Below, in pieces: positions 188 to 62,014 of a DNA stretch of 64,000 bases. The notes under the pieces were generated by a model. It did no database searches. It was not told the DNA's origin and saw only the letters and a list, made by a program, of their open reading frames with translations. The stretch covers positions 248,001 through 312,000 of IMG/VR virus record IMGVR_UViG_3300049001_000044; one strand, 5' to 3'. Made by a program: the position numbers and the translations under genes. Numbering within the stretch: the first letter of the stretch is position 1; each line of letters starts with the position of its first letter.

Positions 188-568
188 TTAATGTGATGGA
201 ATGTCCGCGAAAGGAACCATCTTCTTCAACGACTCTCGATCTTCGCTTTCAAGATGTCCACCGCTTTCCTTAAGTCGCTCGATCATCCAAAAAAATCTAA
301 CAACCTGACGGATAGTTTCGGGATCAAACTTGTCCTCAACAGCATGAGCTAGGCTGCCATCATTGAACCATCCCGATTTACCGTCTGGGCCCTTCACATC
401 TTCGTCATCGTCATCTTGATGAACCCACTCAATACCGCCTCTGCGCATTGCGCCTGCTGCGATCAGAGCGGAAACAATATCAGGAATCTGGTCTACACTT
501 TCCGTGACAATGACGGATTCTTGTAGCGGCAGTCCGGCCAGCTTACGAAGCTTGTTGAGATCTTTCAT
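188..568 (-). CDS. Hypothetical protein, putative internal head protein
   Basis: 126 aa; SD aggag upstream; N-terminus MKDLNKLRKLAGLPLQE|S resembles a protease-cleaved leader; own TAAATA promoter. Confidence 0.7.
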   Translation of the reverse strand: MKDLNKLRKLAGLPLQESVIVTESVDQIPDIVSALIAAGAMRRGGIEWVHQDDDDEDVKGPDGKSGWFNDGSLAHAVEDKFDPETIRQVVRFFWMIERLKESGGHLESEDRESLKKMVPFADIPSH

Positions 569-610
569 TCTTTTTCTCCTAGTTATGTTGCGGTCGACCG
601 CGTGATTCGC

Positions 611-616
611 TATTTA
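611..616 (-). promoter_or_regulatory. T4-like late promoter core TAAATA
   Basis: tattta on + strand, upstream of 188..568; divergent partner of 645..650. Confidence 0.6.
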
Positions 617-644
617 CATGATTCTGTAACTTCAGGATGTTGGA

Positions 645-650
645 TAAATA
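645..650 (+). promoter_or_regulatory. T4-like late promoter core (A)TAAATA
   Basis: ataaata 22 nt upstream of the gp25-like start. Confidence 0.65.
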
Positions 651-671
651 GCTCCACAGCAAGGAGACTAC

Positions 672-1040
672 ATGGCCACCATCTACAAAGGCTTTTCAAC
701 TAAGGACTGGCGAAAGCGTCGTACCTTCTCGATGACCAACCTGGAGATCGTGAAGCGCGACCTGCTCAATCATATCTACACTATCAAAGGTGAACGCGTA
801 ATGATGCCTAACTTCGGCACACGCATTCCTCTTCTAGCATTCGAACCAAACGATGAGAAGACTAGGAAGGTTGTTGAGGATGATTTGACGGCAGTGTTCA
901 CCTACGACCCACGCGTCAAGCTGCTCGGTTTGAACGTGCTAAGTCTACCTGACAACAACGCGATCATTGCTGTGGCAGATTTGCTGTACGTTGAGCTTGA
1001 CGTTAGAGACGAGCTCCACATTGAAGTGGCGACCCAATAA
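672..1040 (+). CDS. gp25: Baseplate wedge subunit, gp25/GPW family
   Basis: KGERVMMPNFGTRI and YDPRV motifs; 122 aa; SD aaggag; directly upstream of the gp6-like gene. Confidence 0.9.
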   Translation: MATIYKGFSTKDWRKRRTFSMTNLEIVKRDLLNHIYTIKGERVMMPNFGTRIPLLAFEPNDEKTRKVVEDDLTAVFTYDPRVKLLGLNVLSLPDNNAIIAVADLLYVELDVRDELHIEVATQ

Positions 1041-1056
1041 CCTTACGAGACGCTAA

Positions 1057-4727: not shown

Positions 4728-4979
4728 ATGAAGATCAAAGAACTGCTAGAGGGTGAGGTTGTTCAGGGCAATTTCCCAAAGCATGGAAAAGTTATTGTCT
4801 CAACTCGTAGAGATGTAGGCGATGAATGGAAGTATTGGACCGGCGTGAATTTCTTCGGTACTAAATCTCGGGCGCTGAAAGTTCCCATGAACAGCGTTGA
4901 TAAGTTGCTTTCTGATTGGGGATTGAAGCTAGATAAACCCACGAGATCAGGTGAAGCAAGAATCGAAAAGGTTCTATAA
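4728..4979 (+). CDS. Small hypothetical protein with capsid-targeting-like leader
   Basis: SD aagga; begins MKIKELLE|G. Confidence 0.7.
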   Translation: MKIKELLEGEVVQGNFPKHGKVIVSTRRDVGDEWKYWTGVNFFGTKSRALKVPMNSVDKLLSDWGLKLDKPTRSGEARIEKVL

Positions 4980-5063
4980 GGCCCAGAGATGCTTCTACTG
5001 CTCGATGTAGAAGCATCTTACTTTCAAGCAGAGAGGTCTCTGGGCCTCTCTAGTAAGCTCCAG
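4979..5063 (+). repeat. Dispersed structured intergenic repeat, copy 1
   Basis: aggcccagaga(4979-4989)/tctctgggcct(5037-5047) outer stem, 12-bp inner hairpin (4987-5018) and ctagtaagctccag tail; shares blocks with the copies at 28006, 38373 and 57401. Confidence 0.75.
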
Positions 5064-5071: not shown

Positions 5072-5605
5072 ATGTTCACATTCAAAACCTACCTAACTGA
5101 ACTCCTCGATAGGACAGCTTCCCTTCACTACACTTTGGATTGGCCTGAAGAATTGGAGGCTGTTGCCGACATCAATGGCCGTCGTGTCATGTTTCAAGCA
5201 GGTCTAAACAACGCAAAGGATCCTGCACATTCATTTTGGGAAGTATCTTTCAAGGAGCGTGGCAGCTGGGGACACCAACTTAGTGGCAATCGTGGTGAAC
5301 TTGAGGTCTTTGCATCCGCAAAGGCATTCATCCAACACATTGTTGACACAAGAGATTCGCCAACAATCGTGTTTAGGGCAGATAATTTGGCAGGTGAAGA
5401 CTATACTAAGAGAGGCGAGCTGTACCAAAAGATGGCTGTCAAGTTCAAGCCAAAGAACTACACGCTGTTCATCGATAAGACCTTATCAGCCTTCCACTTC
5501 GTATTTAAACCGAAGAAGGAAGGGATAACGGATGTGGAAGTACGTGACGATAGAGAAAGAGAACGGCAGATCCAGCAGTACATGAAGGATCACGGTCTAG
5601 ATTAA
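5072..5605 (+). CDS. Hypothetical protein with capsid-targeting-like leader
   Basis: 177 aa; begins MFTFKTYLTE|L, close to the T4 internal-protein leader pattern. Confidence 0.75.
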   Translation: MFTFKTYLTELLDRTASLHYTLDWPEELEAVADINGRRVMFQAGLNNAKDPAHSFWEVSFKERGSWGHQLSGNRGELEVFASAKAFIQHIVDTRDSPTIVFRADNLAGEDYTKRGELYQKMAVKFKPKNYTLFIDKTLSAFHFVFKPKKEGITDVEVRDDRERERQIQQYMKDHGLD

Positions 5606-5640: not shown

Positions 5641-5646
5641 TAAATA
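5641..5646 (+). promoter_or_regulatory. T4-like late promoter core
   Basis: ataaata just upstream of the giant ORF. Confidence 0.6.
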
Positions 5647-5686
5647 TCCCATACTTCATATGGGCACAACCTCTTATACGCAGGCC

Positions 5687-8600
5687 ATGGCAAATAAACA
5701 AAAGATCGATCTCAAAAAGTTCATTCCATCTAATCTTCGGAATGAACTCAACACCAGTCTCGCTGATAACCTGTTCAACCGATTCCTCTCCGAAGAGCAG
5801 AGCGTATCAGTGTCTGGCCAGGTTGGTAAGGTTACCGATCCTAATGATGCGGTGATCCAAGCCAGCGACCTTGACCGAGAACTCAACGCGCTCGTTCCCG
5901 CCCTGTACTTCAAGACAGGCGCTGAGGAAAGTCTGTTCACGTTCGACGACCTGCTCAACCGCATGGCGGCACTGGGCGTGGACATCAACAATCTGAAGTC
6001 CTCACTGTCTGAACAAAGTCTGAACTTGGCTCCTCCTATCGACTTGGACAAGTTCATCAACTTCTCCAACTACTACTGGACTGCAGTCGACGCGAAGCCT
6101 GTTCGCGCAGAGCAGACCATGGCCTGGAATACCGCGCTCAACGCCGAGTACTACGTCATCAAGCGCCCATCTGCTACTTCCAACATCAAGCTGCCTGTCA
6201 ACTTGGCAACGACCAATGACATCAAGCTGTATGGTAAGGGAAGAGAGCCAGAAAAAGTCACGGTTGAATTCCAAAGCAACGACACGTTCACAATCACCGG
6301 TTCAAACGGTCCACTGTCTGTTGACAAGAACCAACTGACTGGCATCAAGACGCTACTCACTGTCACCGGTCCAAACAGCCTCGCCCTGTTCAGCTTCCAA
6401 ATCACTCAAGGTAGTGAAGCATTTGAAGTGGGCGACAAGTTCGAGATCGACATTACCTACGTTACTGGTTCGAACACTGTCTCCTTCACCCCTGGTCCAT
6501 CTCTAATCACTTTGAGCAAGGGCTTCGTGTCGAACATCGTCGCTGACTCTCAGCTGATGATGGTTGACGGTGTGCGCGTCAAAGTCGGTGACACTGTGCT
6601 GGTGAAGAACCAAACTAACGCTGCTGAGAATGGCGTCTACGTTGTGAAGATGGACAAATGGTTGCGTCTCTCCAACTACAGCGATGCATCACATTTCCCA
6701 GCCAGTACTTCGATCTACGTCTACTTTGGTTCGCAAGCAGGTAAGACATTCACGTTGCAATCCACCGTGACTGAAGTGGGTGTGTCTCCTATCGTCTTCG
6801 CACCGGACACTACCAACCCTGCGATTGCGGTAAACGACTGGCAGATCTACAATTTCTGGGTTCACAAGGATGATCTGGACCCAACCTATACGAACGCGAC
6901 TCAAGCTACTCGCCCGATTATCGAGTACGACAATGATCTGCAACTGAACGCTGCTTTCGACGATGATGGTTACCCAACCATCGGTTCCTCTGCGCCTCAG
7001 TCAAAGACGCGCTTCAACCAAATTCCACAGTTCGACCTTTTCTACTACGACGGCCACCACGCTAAGAAGACGTCGGGTATTTTCTTCTACGAGGAAGACC
7101 CTGACTTCGACGTTGACGCGATCTTGCTGCGTCGTACCAAGCTCACTGTCAACGCAGACTACATGTTTGGCCTGGGTGTGAAGGATGAAGACGGTCGCCT
7201 GCTCTTCTTCAAGAAGCAAGGTGAGTTGAAATCCATCTGGGCTCCAGGCAACACCACCGCATCTGTCACCTCGCTCACTCTTAACGCAGAAGCAAGCGAG
7301 ATGAAGGGCAGCATTAGCACGCAAGTCTTTAGCTCGGCTGACACCCAAACTTGGACCATCACTGCAAAGTCTGCAACTACCTTTAGCGTCGTTGGCAGCC
7401 GTAGCGGTTACCAAGGCGATGCGATCATAGGTGTGGCATTCACTGCTCCCGACGACTTCGAAATTGTTATCAACGAAGGAAGCGTAGAGTATGCAGTGGG
7501 CGACACCTTCACCATGAACGTTGCGGGTGTGGTCGCGCCACGCTACGTCAAGAAGGTAGATGGGAATGTTGTGAACGTCGTAGGCGGTCCACTTGGCGAT
7601 ACTGCGCAGGAAGGTTCGTGGATGGTTCCTCGTCGCATGTTCGAAAACATGCTTCGCACTCTCTCCACCGAGATCGCATACGGCGACTTGGTTGATCACT
7701 GCCGTTCGATCATCAAGTCGCAAGACGGCTTCAAAGGTTCCAGCTTCGGTATCAACAACTACCGTCAACTCTCGCACAACCATGGTCTGGGCGGTAACAT
7801 CCGTGAGTACAACGGAAACTTCCCACTCCTTGCTTCCCTGCTGATGCAGCCCGGTATGTCGCCTCTGTCTATCATCGACTTTGGTGAGCAGCAGTATGCG
7901 ACTGCTCTGGCATCAATCGACCAATTCCTGTCGAATGAGCTGGCCAACTACATCGCTACCACTGCAGTTCCATCGCTTAGCTTGATTGATCCAACTGATG
8001 CGCAAGTACAGAACCTTCTCAACACCTTTGAGAACCTTCGTGCGAACGACCAACTCCTGAAGGACGTCTTCTCGGACTCTACCGCGTTGGTGAAGAACTG
8101 GCCTGTCACGCTGCCTATGATGGGTATCACGCGTAAGACGAAGCCAACTATCACGTTCGACATGGATCTAGGTATCGATGTTATCGTTCACCACGACAAC
8201 CACCGTTCACCACTTGCGGCGACTGATGTTGAATTCGATCGTAACCTCGCTCGCACCTTGGTTCGTCGCTCTGACAGCACCACTTCGGCTGGTGTCTTCG
8301 CGGAAGCAATGCCAAACCTTCCTTACGCTCGTCAGCTGTGGTTCAGGCCATCGACGAACGAACTGAAGGTGTTTGACGTCTTTGCGGATACGGACGAAGC
8401 TCCTGCATCTGGTGTTGATGGTCAGTTCTGGTACAAGCGCTCTGCGAATGAACTGCGTGAATGGGATAGCCTATCCAACACGTGGGTCATTAGCGCATCT
8501 ACCATCGCCAGCCGTTGGACCATTCTCAACAGTGCAGCGATTCGTAACAGCCTCGTACTGGCCGTTGAACAGAAGTTGGCTGATTCGGTTCATCCTTCGA

Positions 8601-11600
8601 TGACTCCACGTGTTGCGCTTTCATCGTACGACCTTGACGACATGGCCGCTGTTGAGCTGGCCAGATTCTCGGCTAAGTACGGTTACGACACTTACGCTAC
8701 AGTCTTCGATCAGTCGGACGCATTCACCTGGAACTACAGTATGATGTTTGGCGATGCAAGATGGTTCGATGTCTACGCCACCTACTTCTACAATGAAGTC
8801 GGAGTAGTTGATCTCAAGCGTCCTAACATTGAACCTTGGAAGCTGCTTGGCCTAACCGATAAGCCTTCTGACTGGGATGCTAAGAACGCAGGTGTTGACC
8901 GTCTGTGGAAGACCGAGATGTGGTTGGACATTATGGCTGCAAAGCCAGGCCTGAAGCTGTGCGTTGACATCAACACCGACGCTTTGCTCCCACCATACGT
9001 TTCTTCCTCGCTGCCTGAATCGCAATACGCGCTTACCACCGTTAAGCCAGAAGGCATCGCGAACACCTACAGCTTCCAAGACAACGGTCCAGTTGAGAAC
9101 ATCTGGAGAAAGTCACTTGAGTACGGCTACAGCTTGGCTCGCATCTACTTCAAGCGTCAGCCTCTGCGCTTCGTTGAGAATCTGTGGGGCACCACCTACA
9201 TCTACCCATCCAGCAACGCTCTGCGTCTGGAACGAAACCTGTCTCAGCCATCGTCGCCATCGAAGTTCCTCCTCCATGGTGAGCGTCTCCACAACATCGT
9301 TGAGCGTGATGCAAGTGAACACTTCATCGGCAAGGTGCGCATGAGCAGCACCGCTACGGCGAACGTTGAGTTCCAAGTCACTCACACTGACAACAACAAA
9401 ACCTACTTCTACGCTTACATCAACGGCGCGCTGAAGATGATCGTTGAGGAAGGTAAAGTGTTCAGTTTGAGTGGTGACGGTGTCATTATCAATGACGTCA
9501 TCATAGATGACATGGGTATCCCATTCTCTCTTGGTGATAAATTCACTATCAAGTACACCGCTACGCCTGACCCTGCAGTTGATCCAGCACCGCCTGTCGA
9601 TCCAGAAGATTGTGGCTGCGTCGTCCCAGGAACCAATGATACTCTTCCATACCCACAAGTCGTCGTGACTTCGGTCTGGACCTTTACCCCTGCGAAGACG
9701 AAGAAGTACAACGGTGTTGGTCAACTCTACACCAATCTGCTGCGCTATAACTACATCGACACTGACATGTCGAAGGCAACCAACGCATATCGTAGTTGGG
9801 ACGTTCGCCTGGTTCACCGTCTTGGCGCTCTGATCCGCGGTGACTCTCTTGAAATCGACACCGCGCTTGGTACTCTGCCTGAGACCGCATACAATTTGCT
9901 GTTGAAGCGCAGTGAGTATCTGGACAGCAAGTGGATTTCTGCTCTTCGCATCCAGCTGGTTCAAGCTGGTAAGCGTGTCGCGACCAGCGCGGGCAACTAC
10001 ATTCCTGTTGGTGCAGGCGAAGACTGGGTCTTCCGTCTAGAGACGTACAACCCACAGCACCCGCTCATCGAGTACTACTCCTATGAGCAGGACGAGTACC
10101 TGACCTTCAACGCACTGCAGGGTCAAACGACCAAGCTTGAGTGGAAGCACCGCACTAAGCGCGCACATCTCAACCAAGTCACTACTCCTATCGCCATCAC
10201 TGGCGTGCAGAACCTAATCGACGTTATCTTCGGTTACATCGAAAGACTTGAAGAAGTTGGCTTCAAAATCAACATGACCGAGGATGTTGTCGTTGATGCA
10301 GAGACCGGCCGCAACCTTGATTGGCAGTTGGAAGTTGAAAAGCTGGTGGATCGTATCTACACGAACATGGGACCAGGTAATGGTCACGTATTGAATCCAT
10401 TCCTCCACGCTCTCTACGTTGAGACTCCTACTGGTCTGCTGTCACGCTACACTGAAAGCAGCTTCATCGACACGACTGCGGCGCAGGCAATCTTCGACGT
10501 GACTGGCAAAGTAATCCCAATGAACAACCTCTACGTTGTTCGTACGGACGATTCTGCCGTCACTTACTCGGATGTTCCTATCTTCTCTGCCCACGTCTTC
10601 AACGATGAGTTTGAACACGTGATCGTCTTCAACACCCGTCTGTCGGATGAAATCGGTAGCTCGACCATCTTCGACCCATTCCTGGGTATGAGGATCGACA
10701 CCGCTCGCCTCGCATACACTCGTCAGGCAGAGGTAGATAGGAAGCCTAGGTTCCACGGCTTCGTCCTTAACGGCAATGACGTGAGGCGCAACATCGTATC
10801 GAGCGTGGATTCCATCGCCAACTATTACGATGCATCGAAGACGTTTAACGAGCCAGCGACAGCTAAGCACGCACTATCTCTGCTCGGCTTTAGTAGCAAG
10901 CAATACTTCGCAGACATCGGAATCAGCGACGCAACGCAGTTCAACTTCTGGCGCGGTCTCATTCAAGCTAAGGGTACGAACATGTCGATCGATGCGTTCG
11001 TCAACTACAAGAAATTCGCTGACGCTTCCGTCGATGAGTACTGGGCTTACAAAGTTGCTGACTATGGTGATGCACGCCCTCGCAATCTGCCTGAGATCAA
11101 AATTGAGCAGGCCGATTGCCAGCAGTCGTTCACTCAACTGCAATTCTACGACGCGACCACGGACCACGACCAGCTTCCTCAGTTCATCCAAATCGAAAAG
11201 GAAGATGACGCTCGTTGGTTTAGCATTGATGATCTGGGCGTGGGCATGGTATTCGATGCTCTGCCTACTTCTGTCACCGTCACCGCGGCAAATGTTGGCT
11301 ACTACCAGCTCAACACCATCTTCCATAACGGAGATGATGGTGCACCGACTGTGACGAAGAATGGTCTGGCAACGAACGACGCCACGATGGTGAACGCTTC
11401 CCTCCTGAAGGTGAACGTTGCTGGTACCTACGTCGTCAATGGATACACCTGGGCTAACCCAGTAAAGCAGTCGCCTGTCAAGCTGTTCGACTACAAGACC
11501 AACACACTGGTCAAGCAGATCGCGCTGTGGCACCCAGCTATCGGTATCCACGCCCACGAGCCACTGGAGATCATCAACACCGTTTCGAAGGCAGATCCTG

Positions 11601-13930
11601 CGCTGTACAACTACTCGACGCAGACCACCAACAACCCGAACCTTTCCACTCTTCGCCCATGGGGCAAGAAGGAAGTTGGTAGAGTATGGTGGGACACCGA
11701 CAACCTCGGCTACGTCTCGTACTACGATGCGCAAGTCTATCCTAATCGCAACGAACGTAACGCACGTTGGGGCAGTCTTGCTGAATGGGCGACTATCGAT
11801 CTGTGCGAATGGACAGAATCCACTGTTCCTCCTACCGAATACGATGCACTGGCTAGCGCTCAGCAAGGTAGCTCGGAAATTCCAGCTGAACAGCGCGCAT
11901 CTGGTAAGGCAGCGAAAAAGTCCTACTACAAGCGAGACAGAGAAATCACTGTTCGTCCTATCGCATGGTCGAAAGCTGGCGTTGGCGATCAAGCTGCGCA
12001 CCCAGCATTTGGTCCTGCAGTCGCGACGAAAGTTTACTACGCTGGTGGTGCTCTCTTCGCAGACGCTGGCCGTACTCTCACCATCAACTTGGTGGAAGAT
12101 CGCCACTTTGGTGCATGGTTGAACAACAAGCCAGTTGGTGAAGTCGTCATCACTGACCAGATCGTCTACGACCTGGGTTCGTCCACCTCGCTTGCTACTC
12201 CGCAAGTTGACGGTCTTGGCATCTCTCTCATCGTTGGTGGTCGATTCGGTGATCGTATCGGTCAAATCAACTTGAACGCTCGCACCGCTCCGAACGGTGT
12301 TGAATACCTGACGATGTCAGACGACTTCAACTTCTCGCAAGAGATTGAGCTGCCTGCATTCAACGGCGTTGCTGGTGATCAGCGCGAAATTCGCTTCGAC
12401 GATTTCAGTATCATCCTTACTGTTGACGCGCTGGCGATCGCATCACAGATTGCTAATGCTTGGAGCGACGTTTATGTTCGCGAAGGTGTAAGAGTTGAAG
12501 AGATCATCGCTCTCCCAGACTACGTCTTCGTCAACGATCCAACTGATGCTGATTATCTCAGCCACGATTATGAGTGGAAGGCATGGGACGTTCCTTCTCA
12601 AGAAGATCTGTCCAGTGACTTGATGCCACCACGCAGCACATGGATGCCATACGTCGGTGCGCCAGTCAGCATCGTACCAACCGCTGCTGTTGTTAAGGCA
12701 ATGGGCGAAGCTAACCTGACTCTGAAGAGTGGTATCGAGATCACCCGCTACAACTCTACTTGGACCGACTGGGTCAAGCTGGAGACCGCGAAGGTTGAGA
12801 AGATCAGCGATGGTGAGAACAAAGTTAGCTTTGATCGCTCCTTCACTGATGAGGCAGAGGTAGATGTGAATCGTCTCTCCATCTACGCGAATGGTGTTCA
12901 GCTGAACCCGCAAACGTACATTGTTTCGGGAGGCGTTGGACAGGAAGTAGTTGAGATCGTAAATATCCTGCCAGAAGGAACGCCTGTTCTGTTGATCTAC
13001 CGCGCTTACCAACCAACCGCAGCTGAGTTGGAGTTTGATCCAGCGGTGAAGGATGATGCAGCCGTTCTGACTCAGTACAAGGCAGACTACCAGTACACGA
13101 AAGTGGATGTTCGCAATGAAGCGGGCGTAATCGTAGGTGCCAAGTACTACTTCTGGGTTCAGGATAAGACCGTCGTTCAACCTAACAAGAGCATGTCACT
13201 CGTGCAAGCAAAGAGCATTCTGACTAACGGACCTTCGCAGTTCATGATGTTTGCCCGTCTAACTGACGGCAACTTCGACTCGTGCGTCATCGCTGGTCTG
13301 AACAATCTGGTTACGAACAACGACACGTACAAGCTGCGCTTCCAACGCAACCACACCCTACGTGATGATCCTGAGCAACTGAGTCTGAAGAACACTCATA
13401 CAGAGTGGGCGCTTATCCGTCGCAGCCAGTCGTCTAAGATTCCTAAGACGCTGTGGGATCATCTTGCAAATGCGGCCGCTGCTCATGATGCTGTTGGTAA
13501 CCCACTGCCTTCGAAGTCTCGTATCGATTACGACGAACGCAATGGCACCAGAACGCAGTTTGGTTTCAAGCAAGGTCAAATCTTTGCCGACACCAACCTA
13601 GTTCGTGCTTCGATCGTTAACACGATTCTGAACACATCGCTTAGCATCAAGCTCGGTAACACTTCGATTCCTGACTACATCACCGCTCTCAACTTCGACA
13701 AGAGCGATGAATGGTTCGCAGATGATGACGCAGCAAGAGCAACAATGGATCTTATCTGGTCGACGGCTCGCCCACGTCAAATCAACGAAATCTTCTTCGA
13801 AGTACTGGAAGATGCTCTTGCATCTAACTACGAATTCAGCGACATCTTCAAAACGTCTCTGATCTCGGTGTACTCCACGACGAAGGTTGAAGAACAAGTA
13901 GAAGGCGAAATCGAGGATGGCAAATTCTGA
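5687..13930 (+). CDS. Giant baseplate/tail structural protein (~2750 aa; positional gp7 analogue)
   Basis: Very long ORF (alternative start 5660) downstream of gp6; LAPPIDLDKFINFSNYYW N-terminal block; VGDTVLVKNQTNAAENGVYVV fibre-type motif; beta-rich. Confidence 0.75.
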   Translation: MANKQKIDLKKFIPSNLRNELNTSLADNLFNRFLSEEQSVSVSGQVGKVTDPNDAVIQASDLDRELNALVPALYFKTGAEESLFTFDDLLNRMAALGVDINNLKSSLSEQSLNLAPPIDLDKFINFSNYYWTAVDAKPVRAEQTMAWNTALNAEYYVIKRPSATSNIKLPVNLATTNDIKLYGKGREPEKVTVEFQSNDTFTITGSNGPLSVDKNQLTGIKTLLTVTGPNSLALFSFQITQGSEAFEVGDKFEIDITYVTGSNTVSFTPGPSLITLSKGFVSNIVADSQLMMVDGVRVKVGDTVLVKNQTNAAENGVYVVKMDKWLRLSNYSDASHFPASTSIYVYFGSQAGKTFTLQSTVTEVGVSPIVFAPDTTNPAIAVNDWQIYNFWVHKDDLDPTYTNATQATRPIIEYDNDLQLNAAFDDDGYPTIGSSAPQSKTRFNQIPQFDLFYYDGHHAKKTSGIFFYEEDPDFDVDAILLRRTKLTVNADYMFGLGVKDEDGRLLFFKKQGELKSIWAPGNTTASVTSLTLNAEASEMKGSISTQVFSSADTQTWTITAKSATTFSVVGSRSGYQGDAIIGVAFTAPDDFEIVINEGSVEYAVGDTFTMNVAGVVAPRYVKKVDGNVVNVVGGPLGDTAQEGSWMVPRRMFENMLRTLSTEIAYGDLVDHCRSIIKSQDGFKGSSFGINNYRQLSHNHGLGGNIREYNGNFPLLASLLMQPGMSPLSIIDFGEQQYATALASIDQFLSNELANYIATTAVPSLSLIDPTDAQVQNLLNTFENLRANDQLLKDVFSDSTALVKNWPVTLPMMGITRKTKPTITFDMDLGIDVIVHHDNHRSPLAATDVEFDRNLARTLVRRSDSTTSAGVFAEAMPNLPYARQLWFRPSTNELKVFDVFADTDEAPASGVDGQFWYKRSANELREWDSLSNTWVISASTIASRWTILNSAAIRNSLVLAVEQKLADSVHPSMTPRVALSSYDLDDMAAVELARFSAKYGYDTYATVFDQSDAFTWNYSMMFGDARWFDVYATYFYNEVGVVDLKRPNIEPWKLLGLTDKPSDWDAKNAGVDRLWKTEMWLDIMAAKPGLKLCVDINTDALLPPYVSSSLPESQYALTTVKPEGIANTYSFQDNGPVENIWRKSLEYGYSLARIYFKRQPLRFVENLWGTTYIYPSSNALRLERNLSQPSSPSKFLLHGERLHNIVERDASEHFIGKVRMSSTATANVEFQVTHTDNNKTYFYAYINGALKMIVEEGKVFSLSGDGVIINDVIIDDMGIPFSLGDKFTIKYTATPDPAVDPAPPVDPEDCGCVVPGTNDTLPYPQVVVTSVWTFTPAKTKKYNGVGQLYTNLLRYNYIDTDMSKATNAYRSWDVRLVHRLGALIRGDSLEIDTALGTLPETAYNLLLKRSEYLDSKWISALRIQLVQAGKRVATSAGNYIPVGAGEDWVFRLETYNPQHPLIEYYSYEQDEYLTFNALQGQTTKLEWKHRTKRAHLNQVTTPIAITGVQNLIDVIFGYIERLEEVGFKINMTEDVVVDAETGRNLDWQLEVEKLVDRIYTNMGPGNGHVLNPFLHALYVETPTGLLSRYTESSFIDTTAAQAIFDVTGKVIPMNNLYVVRTDDSAVTYSDVPIFSAHVFNDEFEHVIVFNTRLSDEIGSSTIFDPFLGMRIDTARLAYTRQAEVDRKPRFHGFVLNGNDVRRNIVSSVDSIANYYDASKTFNEPATAKHALSLLGFSSKQYFADIGISDATQFNFWRGLIQAKGTNMSIDAFVNYKKFADASVDEYWAYKVADYGDARPRNLPEIKIEQADCQQSFTQLQFYDATTDHDQLPQFIQIEKEDDARWFSIDDLGVGMVFDALPTSVTVTAANVGYYQLNTIFHNGDDGAPTVTKNGLATNDATMVNASLLKVNVAGTYVVNGYTWANPVKQSPVKLFDYKTNTLVKQIALWHPAIGIHAHEPLEIINTVSKADPALYNYSTQTTNNPNLSTLRPWGKKEVGRVWWDTDNLGYVSYYDAQVYPNRNERNARWGSLAEWATIDLCEWTESTVPPTEYDALASAQQGSSEIPAEQRASGKAAKKSYYKRDREITVRPIAWSKAGVGDQAAHPAFGPAVATKVYYAGGALFADAGRTLTINLVEDRHFGAWLNNKPVGEVVITDQIVYDLGSSTSLATPQVDGLGISLIVGGRFGDRIGQINLNARTAPNGVEYLTMSDDFNFSQEIELPAFNGVAGDQREIRFDDFSIILTVDALAIASQIANAWSDVYVREGVRVEEIIALPDYVFVNDPTDADYLSHDYEWKAWDVPSQEDLSSDLMPPRSTWMPYVGAPVSIVPTAAVVKAMGEANLTLKSGIEITRYNSTWTDWVKLETAKVEKISDGENKVSFDRSFTDEAEVDVNRLSIYANGVQLNPQTYIVSGGVGQEVVEIVNILPEGTPVLLIYRAYQPTAAELEFDPAVKDDAAVLTQYKADYQYTKVDVRNEAGVIVGAKYYFWVQDKTVVQPNKSMSLVQAKSILTNGPSQFMMFARLTDGNFDSCVIAGLNNLVTNNDTYKLRFQRNHTLRDDPEQLSLKNTHTEWALIRRSQSSKIPKTLWDHLANAAAAHDAVGNPLPSKSRIDYDERNGTRTQFGFKQGQIFADTNLVRASIVNTILNTSLSIKLGNTSIPDYITALNFDKSDEWFADDDAARATMDLIWSTARPRQINEIFFEVLEDALASNYEFSDIFKTSLISVYSTTKVEEQVEGEIEDGKF

Positions 13931-34811: not shown

Positions 34812-34817
34812 TATTTA
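34812..34817 (-). promoter_or_regulatory. T4-like late promoter core
   Basis: ataaata downstream of a terminator and upstream of 34786. Confidence 0.65.
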
Positions 34818-39416: not shown

Positions 39417-39419
39417 TGG

Positions 39420-40022
39420 TTACTCCTCTTCTTCGTTGTGGAATGAATCTTCGGATGGTGGAAAGCTGAGATGCACCGCATAGCCGCCATCCTCCATACC
39501 CTCGTCATCGGGGATGCCGTCCATGAGGGATAATTCCGTGTCACCGTGCATGGCAATCATGTCATTAAACCACGAATGGAAATGTTCCATCTTAGTTTTT
39601 CCTTCTGCCTCGGTGACAGCACGGACCCACAGGTGCGCTTCACGCTCTTCAGGGTCTTCGAAGTCGATAGAGATTACTGCATCACCGGATTCATGCTCAA
39701 CGTACATATCCCCTCCAGGATGAGATTCATTCACTGACTCAGTAGTCATCGCCTCGACTTTCGTCTTGAACTTCTGCAGGCTGGTCGAATACACTGGACG
39801 ATTCTTGTCACCATCCATGTCCTCATCAATATCAGAGAGGAAGTACACCAGGTCATCTTCGATTTTCTGCACGCGGAGAATATCGCCAGCTTGATGGCCT
39901 GCGTTGATACGACCTTGGTCGTACGCGCTCGCAATGAAATTCTTGGTGACTGTATAAAGGCTACCCTCTTTGATACTCGCGCTGGCCTCAGATAGGGCCA
40001 AAAGTTGTTTCAACAGTTCCAT
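39420..40022 (-). CDS. Acidic protein with capsid-targeting-like leader
   Basis: MELLKQLLALSE|A; internal TE|SVNE|S. Confidence 0.75.
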   Translation of the reverse strand: MELLKQLLALSEASASIKEGSLYTVTKNFIASAYDQGRINAGHQAGDILRVQKIEDDLVYFLSDIDEDMDGDKNRPVYSTSLQKFKTKVEAMTTESVNESHPGGDMYVEHESGDAVISIDFEDPEEREAHLWVRAVTEAEGKTKMEHFHSWFNDMIAMHGDTELSLMDGIPDDEGMEDGGYAVHLSFPPSEDSFHNEEEE

Positions 40023-40036
40023 ACTTACTCCTGTTT

Positions 40037-40294
40037 TTAGATTGGAATTTGTAGCATCGTACCAACTTTCATCTCTTCAATGCTCAGGATAACGGTTTTC
40101 ATTCTTGTAATCTCATCTCTGTCAGACAATAATTCTTCTGCATGCGATTCAGAATTGGCAATCACTACGTAGAATTCATCATAGCCCTTATGACCAGGAT
40201 TTTTGTTATCTCTACGGAATTTAACGTAGTATGCTTTCGACGTGCCAGCTTTACGACTTGCACTTTCCCTCATAAGTTCTCTCATTAGTTCCAT
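40037..40294 (-). CDS. Small protein with capsid-targeting-like leader
   Basis: ATG 40294 with SD ggagg; MELMRELMRE|S; AT-richer than neighbours. Confidence 0.7.
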   Translation of the reverse strand: MELMRELMRESASRKAGTSKAYYVKFRRDNKNPGHKGYDEFYVVIANSESHAEELLSDRDEITRMKTVILSIEEMKVGTMLQIPI

Positions 40295-40357
40295 ATTTCC
40301 TCCAAACAACCAGTGTTAATTAAATTATACACTGACTTCAGTAGTTTTATACGTGAT

Positions 40358-40540
40358 TTAGCTCGGCATATTAGCTTTAGTCTCTTCTGAATGCTTCTTC
40401 CCCATTCTCGCGAGAGCAATATTTCTCCTGGCTTCCTCACTAATTGGCTTGCGAGGCTTCCTAGGCTTTGCGCTTCTTTCAAAGCTTTGTACGGCGCGAC
40501 TCCATGAATTAACTCCTATAGAGTCGTGCTGTTTTGTACC
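40358..40540 (-). pseudogene. Remnant of a NUMOD3-containing homing endonuclease
   Basis: Frame reads ...KPISEEARRNIALARMGKKHSEETKANM*, two NUMOD3-like units; no catalytic domain or proper start. Confidence 0.6.
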
Positions 40541-42034
40541 TCAGGCGTAAAGCTTCACCAAAGTCTCCCAATTTGCTGCACCAGAAGCCGCCAAGTTCAG
40601 TGCACGTACAAGTGTACGCAGGGAGACTTCTTCCCTACGCTTACCTTCCTTGACCGTCCCCAGAACGTTTTCACGCTGCTTCTTGGTCAGGCTGAGGCCG
40701 TCTTCCAGAGGAATCTTGTGGAGGATCTGTTCCATACGCTCCAGCAGTTCTTCTGGAGTTGGGTTGATCGAGATGACGAAAGCGCGGGTACGCAGCGCTT
40801 TGTCAGGGTCCAGCTTGTTCAGTGACAGGTTTGAAATGAAGATGATTCGGCCTTCGAAGTTGAAGTACTTCGGAATACGGTCGTCATCATCTTCAAGATT
40901 CTCCACGTCTTCAAACTCAGGGTCGATCATATTCGAAGACTTTTTGTTCCAAACCAGCTTACGAATCTTCTTGGTGTCGGTTGCAGCCTTGATCAGGTTA
41001 CGTGCGTCTTGGTCAGCGAGTGCGCCGTCCGAGTCGTCGAACAAGATGATGTCTTTGCGGTGGTGGAAGAGCAGCGAGTAGATACCGATTGCAGAAGCTG
41101 AACCAGTGTTCTTGAAGTAGCCATCACCGTCACGGAGACCTGCTTCATGCAGAGTGTCTTCAACGGTTTGGGTCTTACCAGTACCACCTTTACCTGCAAC
41201 GAACAGTGCGTTGAAGGAGCCCTTGATCAGACCTTGAGTCAGACCTTGCAGGTGTTCTAGGGAGTCAGCGAACGGGATACGGTCAGCAGGATCTTCCAGC
41301 TCTTCTTGCGAAGTTGATTGGTATGTTTCGTTGGTACCGCCAGCCGTAACTAGCAGCTCGCCGTCACCGTGCGCAAGCACTGCTGCAGCCAGTGTGTCTG
41401 TATCAACACCTGGAGCCAGCTGAATACGCTTGCCTTGCTTGACGAGCTGTTCGTCGTAGTCGCCATTTACCAGCACGTCGAAAGCTTCAACAGTGGAGAT
41501 GTGGTACTTGACGATCCAGTCAGTGCGGGTGCAGCTGGTCTTCTTGATACGGATGAGGAAGTCCTTGAGTGCAGATTCGTACGTGTACTCACCACGCTTT
41601 GCCTCAGAAAGGATGGCTTCGCTTTCAGCGACCATTGCTTTTTCTGGCTTGGCGGCGAAGACAGTGAAGGTGCCTTTCTTCGGATTAGCGACGGCGCCGG
41701 CCAGCGCGGGGAGAATCTTGACGAACGAAATGCCGTCAGTCTTCATGGTGTAGGATGGGTCCTTCTTGCCGTCGAATACGTCGATCGACATGATGGAGCT
41801 GGACTTACCAGTTTTTGGTTCCGATTCCCAGTTGAAGCGGATGCACTTGGTGCTGCCGTCAAACACGTAGCGGAGACCCCAACCAGCAGTTTTGCTGTTC
41901 TTGAAGTGTTCGACGCCGGGAACTTTGATGAGTCGTGCACCTACTGCACGCTCCAAGTAGGAGATAACTTTGGTCATCGCGGCATCGACTTTGTGGCTAC
42001 CGATTCGCGCTTCAAATAGGTCTTGTAGTTTCAT
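40541..42034 (-). CDS. AAA+ ATPase with N-terminal extension and capsid-targeting-like leader
   Basis: Walker A GKGGTGKT, Walker B ILFDDSD, sensor IFISN, ALRTRA; starts MKLQDLFE|A; late promoter at 42070. Confidence 0.8.
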   Translation of the reverse strand: MKLQDLFEARIGSHKVDAAMTKVISYLERAVGARLIKVPGVEHFKNSKTAGWGLRYVFDGSTKCIRFNWESEPKTGKSSSIMSIDVFDGKKDPSYTMKTDGISFVKILPALAGAVANPKKGTFTVFAAKPEKAMVAESEAILSEAKRGEYTYESALKDFLIRIKKTSCTRTDWIVKYHISTVEAFDVLVNGDYDEQLVKQGKRIQLAPGVDTDTLAAAVLAHGDGELLVTAGGTNETYQSTSQEELEDPADRIPFADSLEHLQGLTQGLIKGSFNALFVAGKGGTGKTQTVEDTLHEAGLRDGDGYFKNTGSASAIGIYSLLFHHRKDIILFDDSDGALADQDARNLIKAATDTKKIRKLVWNKKSSNMIDPEFEDVENLEDDDDRIPKYFNFEGRIIFISNLSLNKLDPDKALRTRAFVISINPTPEELLERMEQILHKIPLEDGLSLTKKQRENVLGTVKEGKRREEVSLRTLVRALNLAASGAANWETLVKLYA

Positions 42035-42069: not shown

Positions 42070-42075
42070 TATTTA
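42070..42075 (-). promoter_or_regulatory. T4-like late promoter core
   Basis: cataaata just after a terminator hairpin. Confidence 0.65.
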
Positions 42076-49763: not shown

Positions 49764-50060
49764 TTACATGTCACGAATGATGGCAAGAACGTCTGCTTCA
49801 GCCATGATGGTGAAGACTTCGCCTTCAACCTTCACTTCTTGGCCAACGTTCTTGGCGAAGATCACAGTGTCACCTGCTTGAACTTGCAGTGGCTTCACAT
49901 TGCCGTTCTTGTCTTCACGGCCTGGACCGACTGCAATCACAACACCACGGTCAGGGCGTTCGCTCGAAGTGTCGGGGATGTACAGACCACTTTCGGTCTT
50001 CTTGACGGTGTCTGCTTTTTGGACTACGATGCGGTCCAGGATAGGATTGATTTGTGCCAT
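49764..50060 (-). CDS. groES: Co-chaperonin GroES
   Basis: PILDRIVV, KTESGLYIP, GVVIAVGPG, EADVLA. Confidence 0.95.
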   Translation of the reverse strand: MAQINPILDRIVVQKADTVKKTESGLYIPDTSSERPDRGVVIAVGPGREDKNGNVKPLQVQAGDTVIFAKNVGQEVKVEGEVFTIMAEADVLAIIRDM

Positions 50061-57914: not shown

Positions 57915-59033
57915 TTAGTCCTTTTCTTTCAGTAGGAATTTGTTCGAGATGGTCTTGAAGGAGAACAGGCCGTCCATACGCTTGTAAACCAGACCTTCAC
58001 GGATTGGGTGAGTGATGGATGGACCTTCGGCTTTTGCCAGCAGGTCTTCGATGGTTGTGCCAGCTGGAATCTTAAACTCTTGTTCCAGGATAGGGACGTG
58101 CTTGAAGTTCTTACCCATCTGGAAGTTGTGAGTGATGATCTCAAACAGCTGCCACCTTGCTTCCGGCGCCATGTATTCCTGGCGATCGATGTCGAAGATG
58201 TCGAAGACGTGGAACTCGAAGTCCTTCAGATTCTCCCTGTTGCCTTGGATACCAGGACCCATCAGCTCGCCTTGAATTGCGATGTTGCGGCCCAGATTCT
58301 GCAGCATGTTCAGCACACCAGTGGTAGTGGCGGTCTTGATGAGGGTGTTGTCCTTGTTGTCCTCGTTTACCTTCAGTTCCAGGTTACGCGAGCAGACACC
58401 GACTTCACCGTTGAAGTGGTAGATGGTCAGCGACGAGCCATCCAGCTTCATCGTGACTTCGTACTCTGCTTCATTGTCGTTCACGACGTTCGGCATATTC
58501 TGAACGCGCTCTTGATCAGTCTTGCGAATGAACGACGGGAACATACCCTTCACTTGACCAACCAGCTGCGGCGGGATCGGCGGTTCCCACTTGACAACAC
58601 CCAGCAGTTCAGCGAAGTCTTGCTCGCGGATGGCAGTCAGATGTTCGCCAGCCTTGGCGACGACATCGTTCAGATCAGCGCACGTACCGAAGTCAGGGAT
58701 AGTGCTGATGATGTGCCGTGCGATCTCAGGGAACTTGCGCAGTGGGATCGAGAAGCCTTGGCTGACTTGACCACGCAGCTTGATGGTGCGCAGACGGTGG
58801 CCACGCTTGCCTTCGTACTCCCTCCCTGCCTTGTCGACCAGGTCTTGCCAACGTTCATCACCATCTGGCAGGAAGCTGTCGATCTCGAAGTAGACCGCGA
58901 AGTCACCTTGCTGGTAGTTGCCTTTCTGGCTTACGACGTTCCAGCCTTCAATGGTGATGCGCTCGATGCTGTCGGCACCTTCGATGGGATTTACCGCCGA
59001 CACTTGGCGGACTGTTACCAGTTTACGTGTCAT
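57915..59033 (-). CDS. RNA ligase, DRB0094 (Rnl2-like) family
   Basis: RKLVTV, N-terminal tRNA-binding OB-like domain, KLRGQVSQG, KTDQERVQN, TMKLDGSS, QGELMGPGIQGN, REGLVYK, SFKTISN. Confidence 0.9.
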   Translation of the reverse strand: MTRKLVTVRQVSAVNPIEGADSIERITIEGWNVVSQKGNYQQGDFAVYFEIDSFLPDGDERWQDLVDKAGREYEGKRGHRLRTIKLRGQVSQGFSIPLRKFPEIARHIISTIPDFGTCADLNDVVAKAGEHLTAIREQDFAELLGVVKWEPPIPPQLVGQVKGMFPSFIRKTDQERVQNMPNVVNDNEAEYEVTMKLDGSSLTIYHFNGEVGVCSRNLELKVNEDNKDNTLIKTATTTGVLNMLQNLGRNIAIQGELMGPGIQGNRENLKDFEFHVFDIFDIDRQEYMAPEARWQLFEIITHNFQMGKNFKHVPILEQEFKIPAGTTIEDLLAKAEGPSITHPIREGLVYKRMDGLFSFKTISNKFLLKEKD

Positions 59034-59043
59034 GTTGTTTTCC

Positions 59044-59953: not shown

Positions 59954-60198
59954 TAGAACACCACCGCGCAGAGCTTCAAACCTTCTTCCTTAGGATCGCG
60001 TTCGTAGTATTCCAGGTCTTGACCCGTCAAACACTCACGCGACTTCGGATCGTAGTAGTTGGCATGTTCTCCAGATGGGATGAATTCAACACCACGAACG
60101 TAGTGGTAGCCATTGCCTTCATCATCTTCTTGCATGACGAGCGGAATGCTGTCGTCAAGTTCTGCGAGGTCTCGTTTAAGATCACCGATCGTGTACAT
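59953..60198 (-). CDS. Small hypothetical protein
   Basis: D.EGNGY motif common in small phage proteins. Confidence 0.7.
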   Translation of the reverse strand: MYTIGDLKRDLAELDDSIPLVMQEDDEGNGYHYVRGVEFIPSGEHANYYDPKSRECLTGQDLEYYERDPKEEGLKLCAVVF

Positions 60199-60450
60199 TT
60201 AGGTTGCCTTGTTTTCGTAGGAGAAGTGGATGAAGCAGCCCGTGCCACCGCAACCACATTGGACGATGTTGTGGTTGTTGCCTTTCAGCTCCACTTCACC
60301 GCGGTTGATCTTGCTGTTTCGAATGGCTTCGTCCAGCTTGACGATCGCCATGTCATACAGTGTGTAGAAGCGCCGACCGTTTCCACGGCTCAGCTTGTTG
60401 CCAACGAGGCGTTTGATTGAACGCTTCGAATGCGGAATACGCTTACTCAT
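60199..60450 (-). CDS. Small basic protein
   Basis: 83 aa; QCGCG..GC. Confidence 0.6.
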   Translation of the reverse strand: MSKRIPHSKRSIKRLVGNKLSRGNGRRFYTLYDMAIVKLDEAIRNSKINRGEVELKGNNHNIVQCGCGGTGCFIHFSYENKAT

Positions 60451-60598
60451 CCTCTTCTCCTTTCCATTGACGATACTCGGCGAGAGCTTCCCAGTACCAT
60501 TCCCAGTTATCTACGCCACCATTGATAAGTGAATTCAACTTCGCCGAATCATCGAGGAGCTTTTCATACTCCTCTTTTGAAATAGTAACAGTTCCCAT
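60443..60598 (-). CDS. 51-aa protein resembling the gp5.9-type 'host RecBCD inhibitor' family (not in ORF track)
   Basis: MGTVTISKEEYEKLLDDSAKLNSLINGGVDNWEWYWEALAEY...; TAATG-coupled to the RNA ligase. Confidence 0.55.
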   Translation of the reverse strand: MGTVTISKEEYEKLLDDSAKLNSLINGGVDNWEWYWEALAEYRQWKGEEDE

Positions 60599-61725
60599 TA
60601 TTCTGCCTCTGCCGTGCTGTCCATTAACGCCAGTTGGCGCAATGTGTACTCTTGACGGAGGATGTTCCGCTCGAAGTACTCCTTGTAGGATGGCTGCTTT
60701 CCAGTGAAGGCTGCCATGATCAGGCCACGATGAGTGTGGTCCTTGTACTTGATCGCAAAGTCCTTCCGCTCCATCTCACCATCCACACGCAGTGCATCTT
60801 GAACGGTGTTGTGCAGATTGATGAGCTGACTTACTACGCGGTTCTCGATCTTCAAAATGTCTTCGATGTTTACACCATCGCCGACGAGCATGGACTTGAC
60901 ATCATCCAAGCCTTCGTCCAGCACAAGCTGAGCGATGTCACGCTCACGGAGGAAGGTCATTGCGCGGTGACGCTTCAAATACCAGTCGGTCTTGACCTTC
61001 ACCATTTCGCCGTTGTCGTACTGCGCAATCCAACCTTCGATGTTTTCGCTGGTCTTCGCTGCATCGAGCAGCATTTGGAGGGTGGCGAATTCAACATTGA
61101 ACTCTTCCACTACCTTTACCTTGAAGATCACGGCAGCTGCTCGCACTTCTTCCACTGGCCAGTACACACCAGTCCGGTTGTTGCGGATATGTAGCACCTG
61201 CAACTCTGCCTTCTTGTAAGGCAGAACGATGCGAGCGTCCGGAGCGGTGTATTCGAAGATCACGGTATGACCAGCCATCGCCATCTTTTCGGCGAAGATG
61301 AAGAAGGAGAAGTTCTCTGGCTCATTGATCCATGCAGTGGCTTGTCTTGCAACGTCCGAGTCAAACGACTTCTTCGACTTCAGAGCGAAAGTATAGCCAC
61401 CTTCATTCTCCACCTTCACAGTGTGGATCATCGAACCGTCACGCTTGTCCATCAAGCGAGTGATCTTGGACGGCAGATTTTCTGGACGAGTCTCTTCACG
61501 TTCGTTCACATTGAAGAACTTGTGCAGGGGGCGACCGACCACTTCGCCAGTCCGCTTGTCAAACACGATACCACGGCACTCACGTGACCACGCATCGTCA
61601 AAGGTTCCTTCAGCCGACACCATGTAGCAGAACGAGATTAGGTTGGGTGCAATCTCTGCTTCCCGAATCTCTTGCTTGCGCGCAACCTTGGAACGAAATT
61701 CATCGAGTGAGTTGATAGTTAGCAT
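60598..61725 (-). CDS. rnlA: RNA ligase 1 (T4 RnlA-like)
   Basis: ECRGIVF, RPLHKFFN, DKRDGSMI, FEYT, EGWI, VKVKTDWY. Confidence 0.9.
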   Translation of the reverse strand: MLTINSLDEFRSKVARKQEIREAEIAPNLISFCYMVSAEGTFDDAWSRECRGIVFDKRTGEVVGRPLHKFFNVNEREETRPENLPSKITRLMDKRDGSMIHTVKVENEGGYTFALKSKKSFDSDVARQATAWINEPENFSFFIFAEKMAMAGHTVIFEYTAPDARIVLPYKKAELQVLHIRNNRTGVYWPVEEVRAAAVIFKVKVVEEFNVEFATLQMLLDAAKTSENIEGWIAQYDNGEMVKVKTDWYLKRHRAMTFLRERDIAQLVLDEGLDDVKSMLVGDGVNIEDILKIENRVVSQLINLHNTVQDALRVDGEMERKDFAIKYKDHTHRGLIMAAFTGKQPSYKEYFERNILRQEYTLRQLALMDSTAEAE

Positions 61726-61792
61726 GTGTAGCTCCTTGTGAGAGTTGTATTGTATGCTTTGCGACGTCAGATGAAATCTTTATTCAGCGGAA

Positions 61793-61798
61793 TAAATA
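61793..61798 (+). promoter_or_regulatory. T4-like late promoter core at the strand switch
   Basis: aataaata upstream of 61826. Confidence 0.6.
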
Positions 61799-61825
61799 TG
61801 ACTTTCAACCAAAGGAGAAAGTCCC

Positions 61826-62014
61826 ATGAACTACGAGGAACTGAAAGAGAGCATGCCTTCTGCATCTCACGTCTACTACGGTGTTGCACAGGATGTGATC
61901 GAATCTCTCACCGTCTCGGCATGGTGGGGACAAGACAGGGGTACCTACTATATGGGTACTGAAGAGCCAGTCGAGGAACTGGCCGCGCTGGAAGTTCTGC
62001 CAGCAAATTCCTAA
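61826..62014 (+). CDS. Small acidic protein
   Basis: SD aaggag; MNYEELKE|S. Confidence 0.65.
   Translation: MNYEELKESMPSASHVYYGVAQDVIESLTVSAWWGQDRGTYYMGTEEPVEELAALEVLPANS

Follow-up and report, generated by a model that had tools for sequence, protein, structure and literature searches.

Short peptides of the kind that T4 uses to direct proteins into its head recur on many genes of an uncultured soil phage. They came to attention in a 64,000-nucleotide stretch, called the window here, which is bases 248,001-312,000 of the 343,229-bp IMG/VR record IMGVR_UViG_3300049001_000044. Through the genome as a whole, about 45-55 genes appear to be tagged, with four classes of leader, roughly 10% of all phage genes. 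These leaders are probably capsid-targeting and processing propeptides of the T4 type, belonging to a system expanded in this phage to some 45-55 genes. The system itself is known, as T4 capsid targeting; what is new is its great expansion here. Window and genome coordinates are kept apart in what follows, and window genes are named by start position and strand.

The phage record has direct terminal repeats and 50.5% G+C, and comes from a soil metagenome assembly; a look for sequencing runs turned up soil DNA metagenomes only. Its DNA polymerase best matches that of the Ralstonia jumbo phage RsoM2USA (47% identity), next those of XacN1, Xoo-sp13 and Stenotrophomonas jumbo phages, and then those of Rak2-like phages; by these polymerase matches the phage, which is uncultured, belongs to the T4 superfamily as a distant relative. 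A simple codon-usage caller predicted 512 genes, only 147 of which have an RsoM2USA homologue; most leader proteins have none.

One way to recognize the leaders as a family is to ask where in a protein they occur. A strict N-terminal pattern fits 23 genes, as against 0.54 expected from internal positions, an enrichment of about 40-fold. With an iterated matrix of the 10 N-terminal residues, 39 of the 512 genes score at least 10.7 bits and the next-best gene 4.5 bits; the original prediction, which counted about ten such open reading frames (ORFs), was thus an undercount by the matrix alone. A hidden Markov model (HMM) picks out, above 8.5 bits, 39 of the 512 N-termini and 1 of 1,754 internal-Met controls. 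When 27,587 start-codon-like positions were scanned in six frames, 43 matched: 39 are called starts and three are plausible starts missed by the caller, so that 42 of the 43 fall at gene starts. There are also members with the motif displaced by one to three residues (MFTFKTYLTE, MVSFKEFISE, MKTFKQFLSE), and the pattern FKx[FY]xxE has 20 copies in the genome against one in the control. Pairs of N-termini with a BLOSUM score of 30 or more number 105 against 9, a clear excess; single-linkage clustering of N-termini at BLOSUM 24 proved too loose for defining classes.

The proteins behind the leaders had been described as otherwise unrelated, and this is borne out: once the leaders are removed, BLASTP leaves every body a singleton apart from one paralog family of 8 members and three pairs. 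Conservation within this 8-member family is highest over the first 10 alignment columns (0.75, against 0.14-0.69 elsewhere), after which comes a linker that varies. The conserved Leu, Glu, Phe and Arg of the leaders are spelled with varied synonymous codons, and the DNA upstream has only the ribosome-binding site in common; selection therefore acts on the leader peptide, not on the DNA. A site of the form [LIFMVY]-x-E is present in 35 of the 39 leaders, ending at residue 8 or 9 in 33, and the residue after the Glu is mostly A, S, N, Q or G. The leaders do not resemble Sec, Tat or lipoprotein signal peptides, in which a basic N-region is followed by a hydrophobic core of 7-15 residues: they carry charges, are amphipathic and reach their final Glu by residue 8-12, and genuine lipoprotein-like N-termini elsewhere in the genome have low matrix scores. 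A short peptide at the extreme N-terminus of unrelated proteins is found, then, in 39-42 strong members, to which the offset, class C and class D members are added.

The four classes differ in sequence. Class A, MRFK[DQT][YF][LI]xE, has at least 15 members and class B, MK[LVI]x[EQD]L[FL]E, has 24; class C, xL[IL]KELxxLxE, occupies a window locus at 38694-40294 (-), and class D, NKLRKLAG[LM]...E, is found on three genes. An RsoM2USA homologue of the 8-member class A family bears a class B leader; the leader classes are therefore interchangeable modules.

The resemblance to T4 can be followed residue by residue. In T4 the propeptides measure 10-20 residues; they guide proteins to the scaffolding core, and gp21 cleaves them after Glu (PMC5694885). 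Mutations made in the IpIII leader assign residues 4 and 7 to targeting, 8 and 10 to processing (PMC9026906). Read from AF158101, the T4 leaders are MKTYQEFIAE for IpII and IpIII, MELITELFDE for Alt and MAKINELLRE for gp24. The leader MKTFKQFLSE (genome 342298+; also at RsoM2USA ORF89) matches T4 at M1, K2 and T3 and has an aromatic residue at 4, F7, an aliphatic residue at 8 and E10. Class A keeps the four IpIII determinants shifted by one residue (F3, Y/F6). For class B (MKVNELLE, MKIKELLE), with [LVI]3 and L6, the closest T4 counterpart is the gp24 propeptide. Both the targeting (4, 7) and the processing (I8, E10) determinants of IpIII are accordingly found among the leaders.

The genome also encodes a T4-type head assembly. 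Its prohead protease (genome 224554-225168 (-)) matches Peptidase_S77 (PF03420) with 84.7 bits and shares 34% identity with T4 gp21, the ELNHP and GVSSRG stretches being retained together with an N-terminal QLLIE, a sequence that in T4 fits the cleavage logo (PMC9026906). The portal gene flanks it on one side and scaffold-like genes on the other, and a gp23 homologue (312 bits) lies downstream, which places a gp21-family protease within a T4-type head module; a gp24-like paralogue lies ~13 kb from that module. The capsid protein is 27% identical to that of T4, and in the alignment FLTE-A of T4 gp23, which from the T4 literature we take to be the maturation cleavage site, faces AYLKE39 followed by T. 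This is the predicted maturation site of the phage capsid protein and has the same [FY]LxE motif as the leaders; the ending YLKE is also that of the leader MRFKDYLKE. Three leader genes come directly after the capsid gene. Candidates for prohead core proteins are three paralogues (genome 214644-215673 (-) and 223165-223611 (-)) with N-termini such as MSHIKSLINNFINGRTDEAGLDLH, which resemble that of T4 gp67, MEGLIEAIKSNDLVAARKLF.

A further strand of evidence comes from promoter motifs. The promoter-like TAAATA occurs 106 times in the genome, 83 times in intergenic DNA, which makes up 11.8% of the total; 74 genes have it on the same strand within 80 nt upstream, with distances from motif end to ATG peaking at 25-35 nt. 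The full T4 octamer TATAAATA is not enriched in the genome. TAAATA precedes the protease gene, genes with N-termini like those of the RsoM2USA tail sheath and structural proteins, and baseplate-region genes, and the phage encodes a homologue of the late sigma factor gp55 (E 1.5e-8). The motif lies within 80 nt of 13 of the 39 leader genes and 61 of the 473 others (p 0.0015), and of 12 of the 24 class B genes. If whole same-strand runs are considered, TAAATA heads those of 37 of the 39 leader genes as against 235 of the 473 others (p 4.5e-9), so that the enrichment in TAAATA-driven genes, which the original prediction proposed as a check, holds genome-wide. Motif and gp55 homologue together suggest late expression from gp55-type promoters, three window genes excepted.

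A cultured relative supplies evidence from virions. Ten abundant virion bands of RsoM2USA were identified using liquid chromatography coupled to tandem mass spectrometry (PMC8504454). The deposited genes for two of these proteins, RsoM2USA_89 (28.56 kDa) and RsoM2USA_132 (76.62 kDa), fit the published virion masses; the first begins MKTFKQFLSE, the second MKTFKQFLNTLME, with AATAAATA upstream. Homology of the two to this phage was found only in the leader; the virion data therefore speak to the tag and not to any one cargo protein. The terms ‘N-terminal’ and ‘late promoter’ are absent from the text of the RsoM2USA paper (PMC8504454), which does not discuss leaders or processing, and no description of such leaders in the RsoM2USA, XacN1 and Rak2-like group was found in the literature. 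The class B leaders of RsoM2USA are slightly different: a strict back-translated pattern gave no match, and they were found after gene calling. In the same phage (MG752970.1, ~171-205 kb) there is a large paralogous set of proteins of 190-215 aa with MKLxEI starts (MKLHEI, MKLNEI, MKLSEI and others), which may be a further leader type specific to RsoM2USA. Taken together, the residue match with T4, the machinery genes, the capsid site, the enrichment in TAAATA units and the RsoM2USA virion proteins support well the prediction that these are T4-style leaders cut after Glu by a gp21-type protease.

All ten ORFs and N-terminal peptides of the original prediction stand in the window at the positions given there; eight of them hold as members of the family, and two, at 34786- and 61826+, are not members by sequence. 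Each had also been assigned to a unit headed by TAAATA, which stands for seven of the ten and fails for the three genes at 38694-40294. The top example is the 497-aa AAA+ ATPase at window 40541-42034 (-), with the class B leader MKLQDLFE at 42011-42034, next residue A (17.8 bits), and a late-promoter-like TAAATA at 42070-42075 (-); ATAAATA is also found upstream of its orthologues in four relatives. Two class B leaders stand on smaller proteins: MKIKELLE (4728-4751, next residue G; 16.4 bits) on an 83-aa protein at 4728-4979 (+), for which there is no Pfam or PHROG match, and MKIRELLE (28389-28412, next residue R; 13.7 bits) on a 104-aa protein with a GTG start at 28098-28412 (-), one gene downstream of TAAATA at 29080. 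On the 177-aa protein at 5072-5605 (+) the leader, MFTFKTYLTE (5072-5101, next residue L), is of class A with the motif displaced by one residue; it fits FKx[FY]xxE, and its FKTYLTE recurs unchanged in the leader of a gene that begins at genome 31536(-). The 4728+ gene is two genes downstream of a TAAATA at 645-650 (+), which heads the baseplate-gene run containing both 4728+ and 5072+; between the two, at 5024-5046 (+), is a G+C-rich hairpin, AGAGAGGTCTCTGGGCCTCTCT, that may be a terminator or RNA-processing site within the late unit. A 126-aa protein at 188-568 (-) begins with the class D leader MKDLNKLRKLAGLPLQE (518-568, next residue S), with TAAATA at 611-616; its N-terminal NKLRKLAG[LM] recurs at genome 223925(-), directly after the prohead protease, and at genome 231899(-), and the RsoM2USA counterpart at the post-protease position begins MDITRLKHLAGVPLLE, also class D. 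Sequence searches of Pfam, PHROG and PDB with the ten window proteins gave only a weak AAA_16 match and PHROGs of unknown function.

The two examples outside the family differ in kind. The 1253-aa protein at window 31025-34786 (-), with TAAATA at 34812-34817, has the N-terminus MSRIQKGEVIRE followed by GIAHLEDL, which is outside the leader classes by sequence. The gene caller chose a start 8 codons downstream (34762, 1245 aa); the spacing of 25 nt from TAAATA to the upstream ATG favours the earlier start, as originally proposed. Residues 1-549 of the 1245-aa version are 33% identical to RsoM2USA_438, which begins ...MLTFKQYAQPILTE followed by GISHLEDL, and both proteins thus have an N-terminal extension ending [IV]-x-x-E just ahead of a conserved GI[AS]HLEDL. 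A tie to a virion protein through RsoM2USA ORF438, which is on the published list of such proteins, was considered and is weakened by the masses, 51.69 kDa as published and 62.4 kDa for the deposited gene; an Atlas search with the 1253-aa protein returned only a sub-threshold DUF6267 lead. The 62-aa ORF at 61826-62014 (+), with its MNYEELKE start, is a doubtful member: its matrix score is -2.8, and the support for it is the promoter only, TAAATA at 61793-61798.

The class C trio is of interest for what happens at its locus in relatives. In the window it comprises a 240-aa protein at 38694-39416 (-), with leader MQLIKELMALKE (next residue G), a 200-aa protein at 39420-40022 (-), with leader MELLKQLLALSE (next residue A), and an 85-aa protein at 40037-40294 (-), with the class C-like leader MELMRELMRE (next residue S), the weakest of the three; the first is weak by matrix and HMM. 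In a close relative, L060, whose AAA+ protein is 76% identical, three genes at the same locus begin MEFIKELLSLNE, MDLIKELLQLKE and MTNLIKELMSLKE, leaders of the type seen at 39416- and 40022-, and their bodies are mostly unrelated to those of the window. Such leaders on mostly unrelated bodies confirm the class C membership of the weak-scoring 39416-, 40022- and 40294-. Residues 105-200 of the 40022- protein are 63% identical to residues 21-115 of the L060 protein beginning MDLIKELLQLKE; the same kind of leader has therefore been joined to a reshuffled body. Another relative has a class A leader gene, MNFKQFLAE, at the position of the class C locus. In more distant relatives (AAA+ protein ~58-59% identical), no leader genes were found beside the AAA+ gene; the cassette locus is therefore confined to close relatives. 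The gap between the AAA+ gene and the trio (window 40285-40540 (-)) contains a short ORF ending ...SEEARRNIALARMGKKHSEETKANMPS that by its sequence looks like a decayed fragment of a NUMOD3-type homing endonuclease; a relative's gene at the same gap position has a faint NUMOD3 match.

The original prediction that enzymes are among the cargo is upheld, as far as predicted folds go, by an ADP-ribosyltransferase, an amidoligase, a nucleotidyltransferase and the AAA+ ATPase. The first (genome 207632-208201(-)) is of the ART-PolyVal/AcrIF11-like kind, with its fold beginning near residue 17; the second (genome 165541-166797(-)) has an Amidoligase_2 domain; the third (genome 242756-243472(+)) is cytidylyltransferase-like. 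Weak matches to a transglutaminase-type core and to a ParB-like nuclease were obtained among the cargo, and no recognisable enzymatic domain was found in the 8-member class A family. The AAA+ ATPase of the window has a MoxR/RuvB/RFC-like C-terminal half and a new N-terminal domain. Its AF2 model leaves residues 1-15 without structure (pLDDT <50), and the fold begins at about residue 16, leader and linker being the sole unstructured N-terminal part. Metagenomes hold more than 500 homologues of it, and among the best 120 a leader of the form [LF]xE followed by [AS], sometimes with insertions, is kept in nearly all. As a group, the mature parts of leader proteins are slightly more basic than other proteins (median isoelectric point, pI, 6.5 vs 5.7, p 0.014).

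On the capsid-targeting reading, the sequence of events would run as follows. Leader genes would be transcribed late, from TAAATA promoters by means of the gp55-like sigma factor; the tagged proteins would bind the scaffolding core of the assembling prohead through their first 8-12 residues, the contact being made by position 2, which is basic, and by a pair of hydrophobic or aromatic residues at a spacing of three; the shell would close around the core; the gp21-family protease would cut after the Glu of the terminal [L/I/F]-x-E, freeing the mature protein inside the head; the mature protein would then stay with the DNA, and at least some of the cargo would be ejected into the next host. We infer core binding, packaging, cleavage, ejection and effector function for the tagged proteins of this phage; of these, ejection with the DNA, together with inhibition of host defences, is suggested by analogy with T4 Ip1-3 and Alt and by the enzyme-like cargo.

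A different perspective accepts that the tags target the prohead and supposes that most of the cargo is building material: scaffold and core proteins or DNA-condensing internal proteins, degraded or retained in the head, and not weapons. T4 gp67, gp68, gp22 and gp24 are likewise processed head proteins (PMC5694885). Moreover, the class D leader stands on an acidic, Lys-rich, low-complexity protein right after the protease, both here and in RsoM2USA; the capsid gene has three leader genes behind it; a recognisable enzymatic domain is missing from the 8-member class A family; and mature parts slightly more basic than other proteins would suit such a role. Against this, several cargo proteins have enzyme folds (ADP-ribosyltransferase, amidoligase, nucleotidyltransferase, AAA+), and the lack of an RsoM2USA homologue for most leader proteins, with one locus at which close relatives differ by swapped cargo, makes a pattern of arms race and not of structure. 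As the fate of most of the cargo, building material is a possibility to be kept in mind, on the doubtful side; for part of the set it is plausible. The shared N-terminus might instead be a handle for some other partner: a degron that times proteolysis, a peptide that binds a chaperone (GroES/GroEL) or a clamp, or a signal for sorting to a different site within the cell. The leader on a conserved AAA+ ATPase outside the head modules would fit, as would the fact that the phage encodes its own GroES; but the position-by-position match to T4 propeptides at the mapped residues, the motif at the predicted capsid maturation site, the leader-bearing proteins in RsoM2USA virions and the strong association with late promoters all speak for the prohead, and a handle of this other kind is unlikely. 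Least probable by far is that the motif stems from a constraint on translation initiation or mRNA, such as an A-rich second codon or low structure, from recombination linkers where genes meet, from paralogy or from chance. The dipeptide MK is common at protein starts, AAA is a favoured second codon, and a loose rule of ‘any Glu within 8-17 residues’ fits many proteins, two of the ten window examples fitting only that; yet free variation of synonymous codons, unconserved upstream DNA, the ~40-fold enrichment, the 42 of 43 matches at gene starts and the unrelated bodies contradict it. DNA-level conservation, paralogy and chance were rejected as origins of the leaders on the enrichment, the unrelated bodies and the codon variation.

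T4-type capsid targeting is not free of difficulties itself, and several observations count against it. The AAA+ ATPase is conserved and lies outside the head modules in relatives, which is unusual for an internal protein. Four of the 39 leaders are without [LIFMVY]-x-E in the N-terminal stretch examined. The class C trio (38694-40294) is preceded by a 246-nt gap that lacks TAAATA and contains instead a sigma-70-like extended -10-like element, TGTATAAT. The phage is known as a soil metagenome assembly alone. The RsoM2USA virion data are confined to gel bands, and two of the masses disagree with the deposited genes: ORF257 at 17.57 vs 19.65 kDa, and ORF438 as given above. The virion chitinase and lipase of XacN1 have no leader, and XacN1 is almost without the class A pattern. 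As to the RsoM2USA discrepancies, the genes concerned are at 166235-166771 (ORF257) and 309479-311161 (ORF438) of MG752970.1, and ORF429 is 51.58 kDa; processing or a slip of numbering could account for the mismatch.

Host defences meet the proteins carried in the head before any other phage molecule, and such proteins are normally found by mass spectrometry of the virions of cultured phages. If the capsid-targeting reading is right, the tag marks candidate head-carried proteins directly in the sequence of an uncultured phage, ~50 genes in this case, and yields a catalogue of candidate injected effectors, most without known relatives. The T4 targeting code would have been kept across very distant relatives (recall the 27% identity of the capsid proteins), which helps to define a minimal code; it suggests, too, that in jumbo relatives of T4 the larger head is filled through an expansion of the T4 mechanism and not by means of phiKZ-like long propeptides. 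For the engineering of such phages in laboratory hosts, the tags could double as portable signals for packaging. A bolder version, offered tentatively, supposes that about a tenth of the phage's genes encode a tagged proteome packaged in the head, that the leader classes are distinct sorting codes, for copy number, core position or release order, and that the cargo consists of fast-exchanged injected enzymes (the four named above) acting on the host before phage expression. Were that so, the leader would reveal injected effectors from sequence alone throughout a large and mostly uncultured clade of soil phages.

Other features of the window may be recorded briefly. Its first part (1-26 kb) holds baseplate and tail genes; beyond 26 kb are genes for a DnaB-type helicase, primase, DNA polymerase, GroES, Tpt1 and two RNA ligases. 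The phage GroES (Cpn10, 97 bits; 49764-50060 (-)) adjoins the DNA polymerase and is the counterpart of T4 gp31, which acts in capsid protein folding. An RNA-repair set comprises a Tpt1/KptA RNA 2'-phosphotransferase (27189-27755 (-)), an RNA ligase with a PHA02142 OB domain (57915-59033 (-)) and a T4 Rnl1-like RNA ligase (60598-61725 (-)), and probably counters host tRNA-cleaving defences. A 2756-aa ORF (5660-13930 (+)) directly follows a TAAATA at 5641; the virion bands of RsoM2USA include a 2541-aa ‘structural protein’, ORF361, neighbour of a baseplate wedge gene (PMC8504454). Three tandem paralogues with the common N-terminus M.AKYV..S.TQAN.I.D.AA (window 62552-63379 (+), window 63394-64000+ (+) and genome 312301 (+)), with TAAATA at window 62032 in front and no Pfam match, may be fibre or decoration proteins.

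The closest known system is the capsid targeting sequence of T4 (IpI-III, Alt, gp24; Mullaney & Black 1996; PMC9026906, PMC5694885). Both phages place a peptide of 8-12 residues at the extreme N-terminus of unrelated proteins, in which hydrophobic or aromatic residues are spaced by three and the terminal Glu has an aliphatic residue two positions ahead of it and a small residue behind it; both have a gp21-family protease, capsid proteins of the gp23/gp24 type, a gp55-type late promoter and an ADP-ribosyltransferase among the cargo, the leader-bearing enzyme here paralleling T4 Alt. They differ in scale, T4 having ~6 tagged genes as against ~45-55; in the leaders, which here fall into four classes, the commonest of 8-9 residues rather than 10; in the promoter core, TAAATA without the leading TA; and in the cargo, which here includes an AAA+ ATPase, an amidoligase and a nucleotidyltransferase and is known from genes alone.

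The class C locus has its own parallel in the variable ip loci of T-even phages, which, as PMC12373910 reports in citing Repoila et al. 1994, hold different Ip genes with a conserved leader, inhibitors of GmrSD. The locus here is like these in that, from this phage to L060, similar leaders stand on mostly unrelated or reshuffled bodies; it differs in leader class (xLIKELxxLKE) and in having an apparent decayed homing-endonuclease fragment beside it. The jumbo phages phiKZ, 201phi2-1 and SPN3US (PMC5694885, PMC10052503) likewise pack their heads with dozens of proteins, which a gp21-related protease trims after Glu. Their propeptides, however, are usually >100 residues long with an A/S/G-x-E motif, whereas leaders here have 8-17 aa with L/I/F two before the Glu, so that long propeptides of the phiKZ/SPN3US type are not what is found; phiKZ-type phages are also without a T4-type scaffold and late sigma factor, and the tags described here are short and T4-like. 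Finally, the polyvalent proteins known from phages and conjugative elements (Iyer et al. 2017, PMC5512222) share with this cargo the domains ART-PolyVal and Amidoligase_2 and, weakly, a ParB-like nuclease, and delivery with the incoming DNA has been proposed in both cases. A polyvalent protein, however, is one giant fused polypeptide; here the cargo would travel as separate small proteins, each with a tag of its own.

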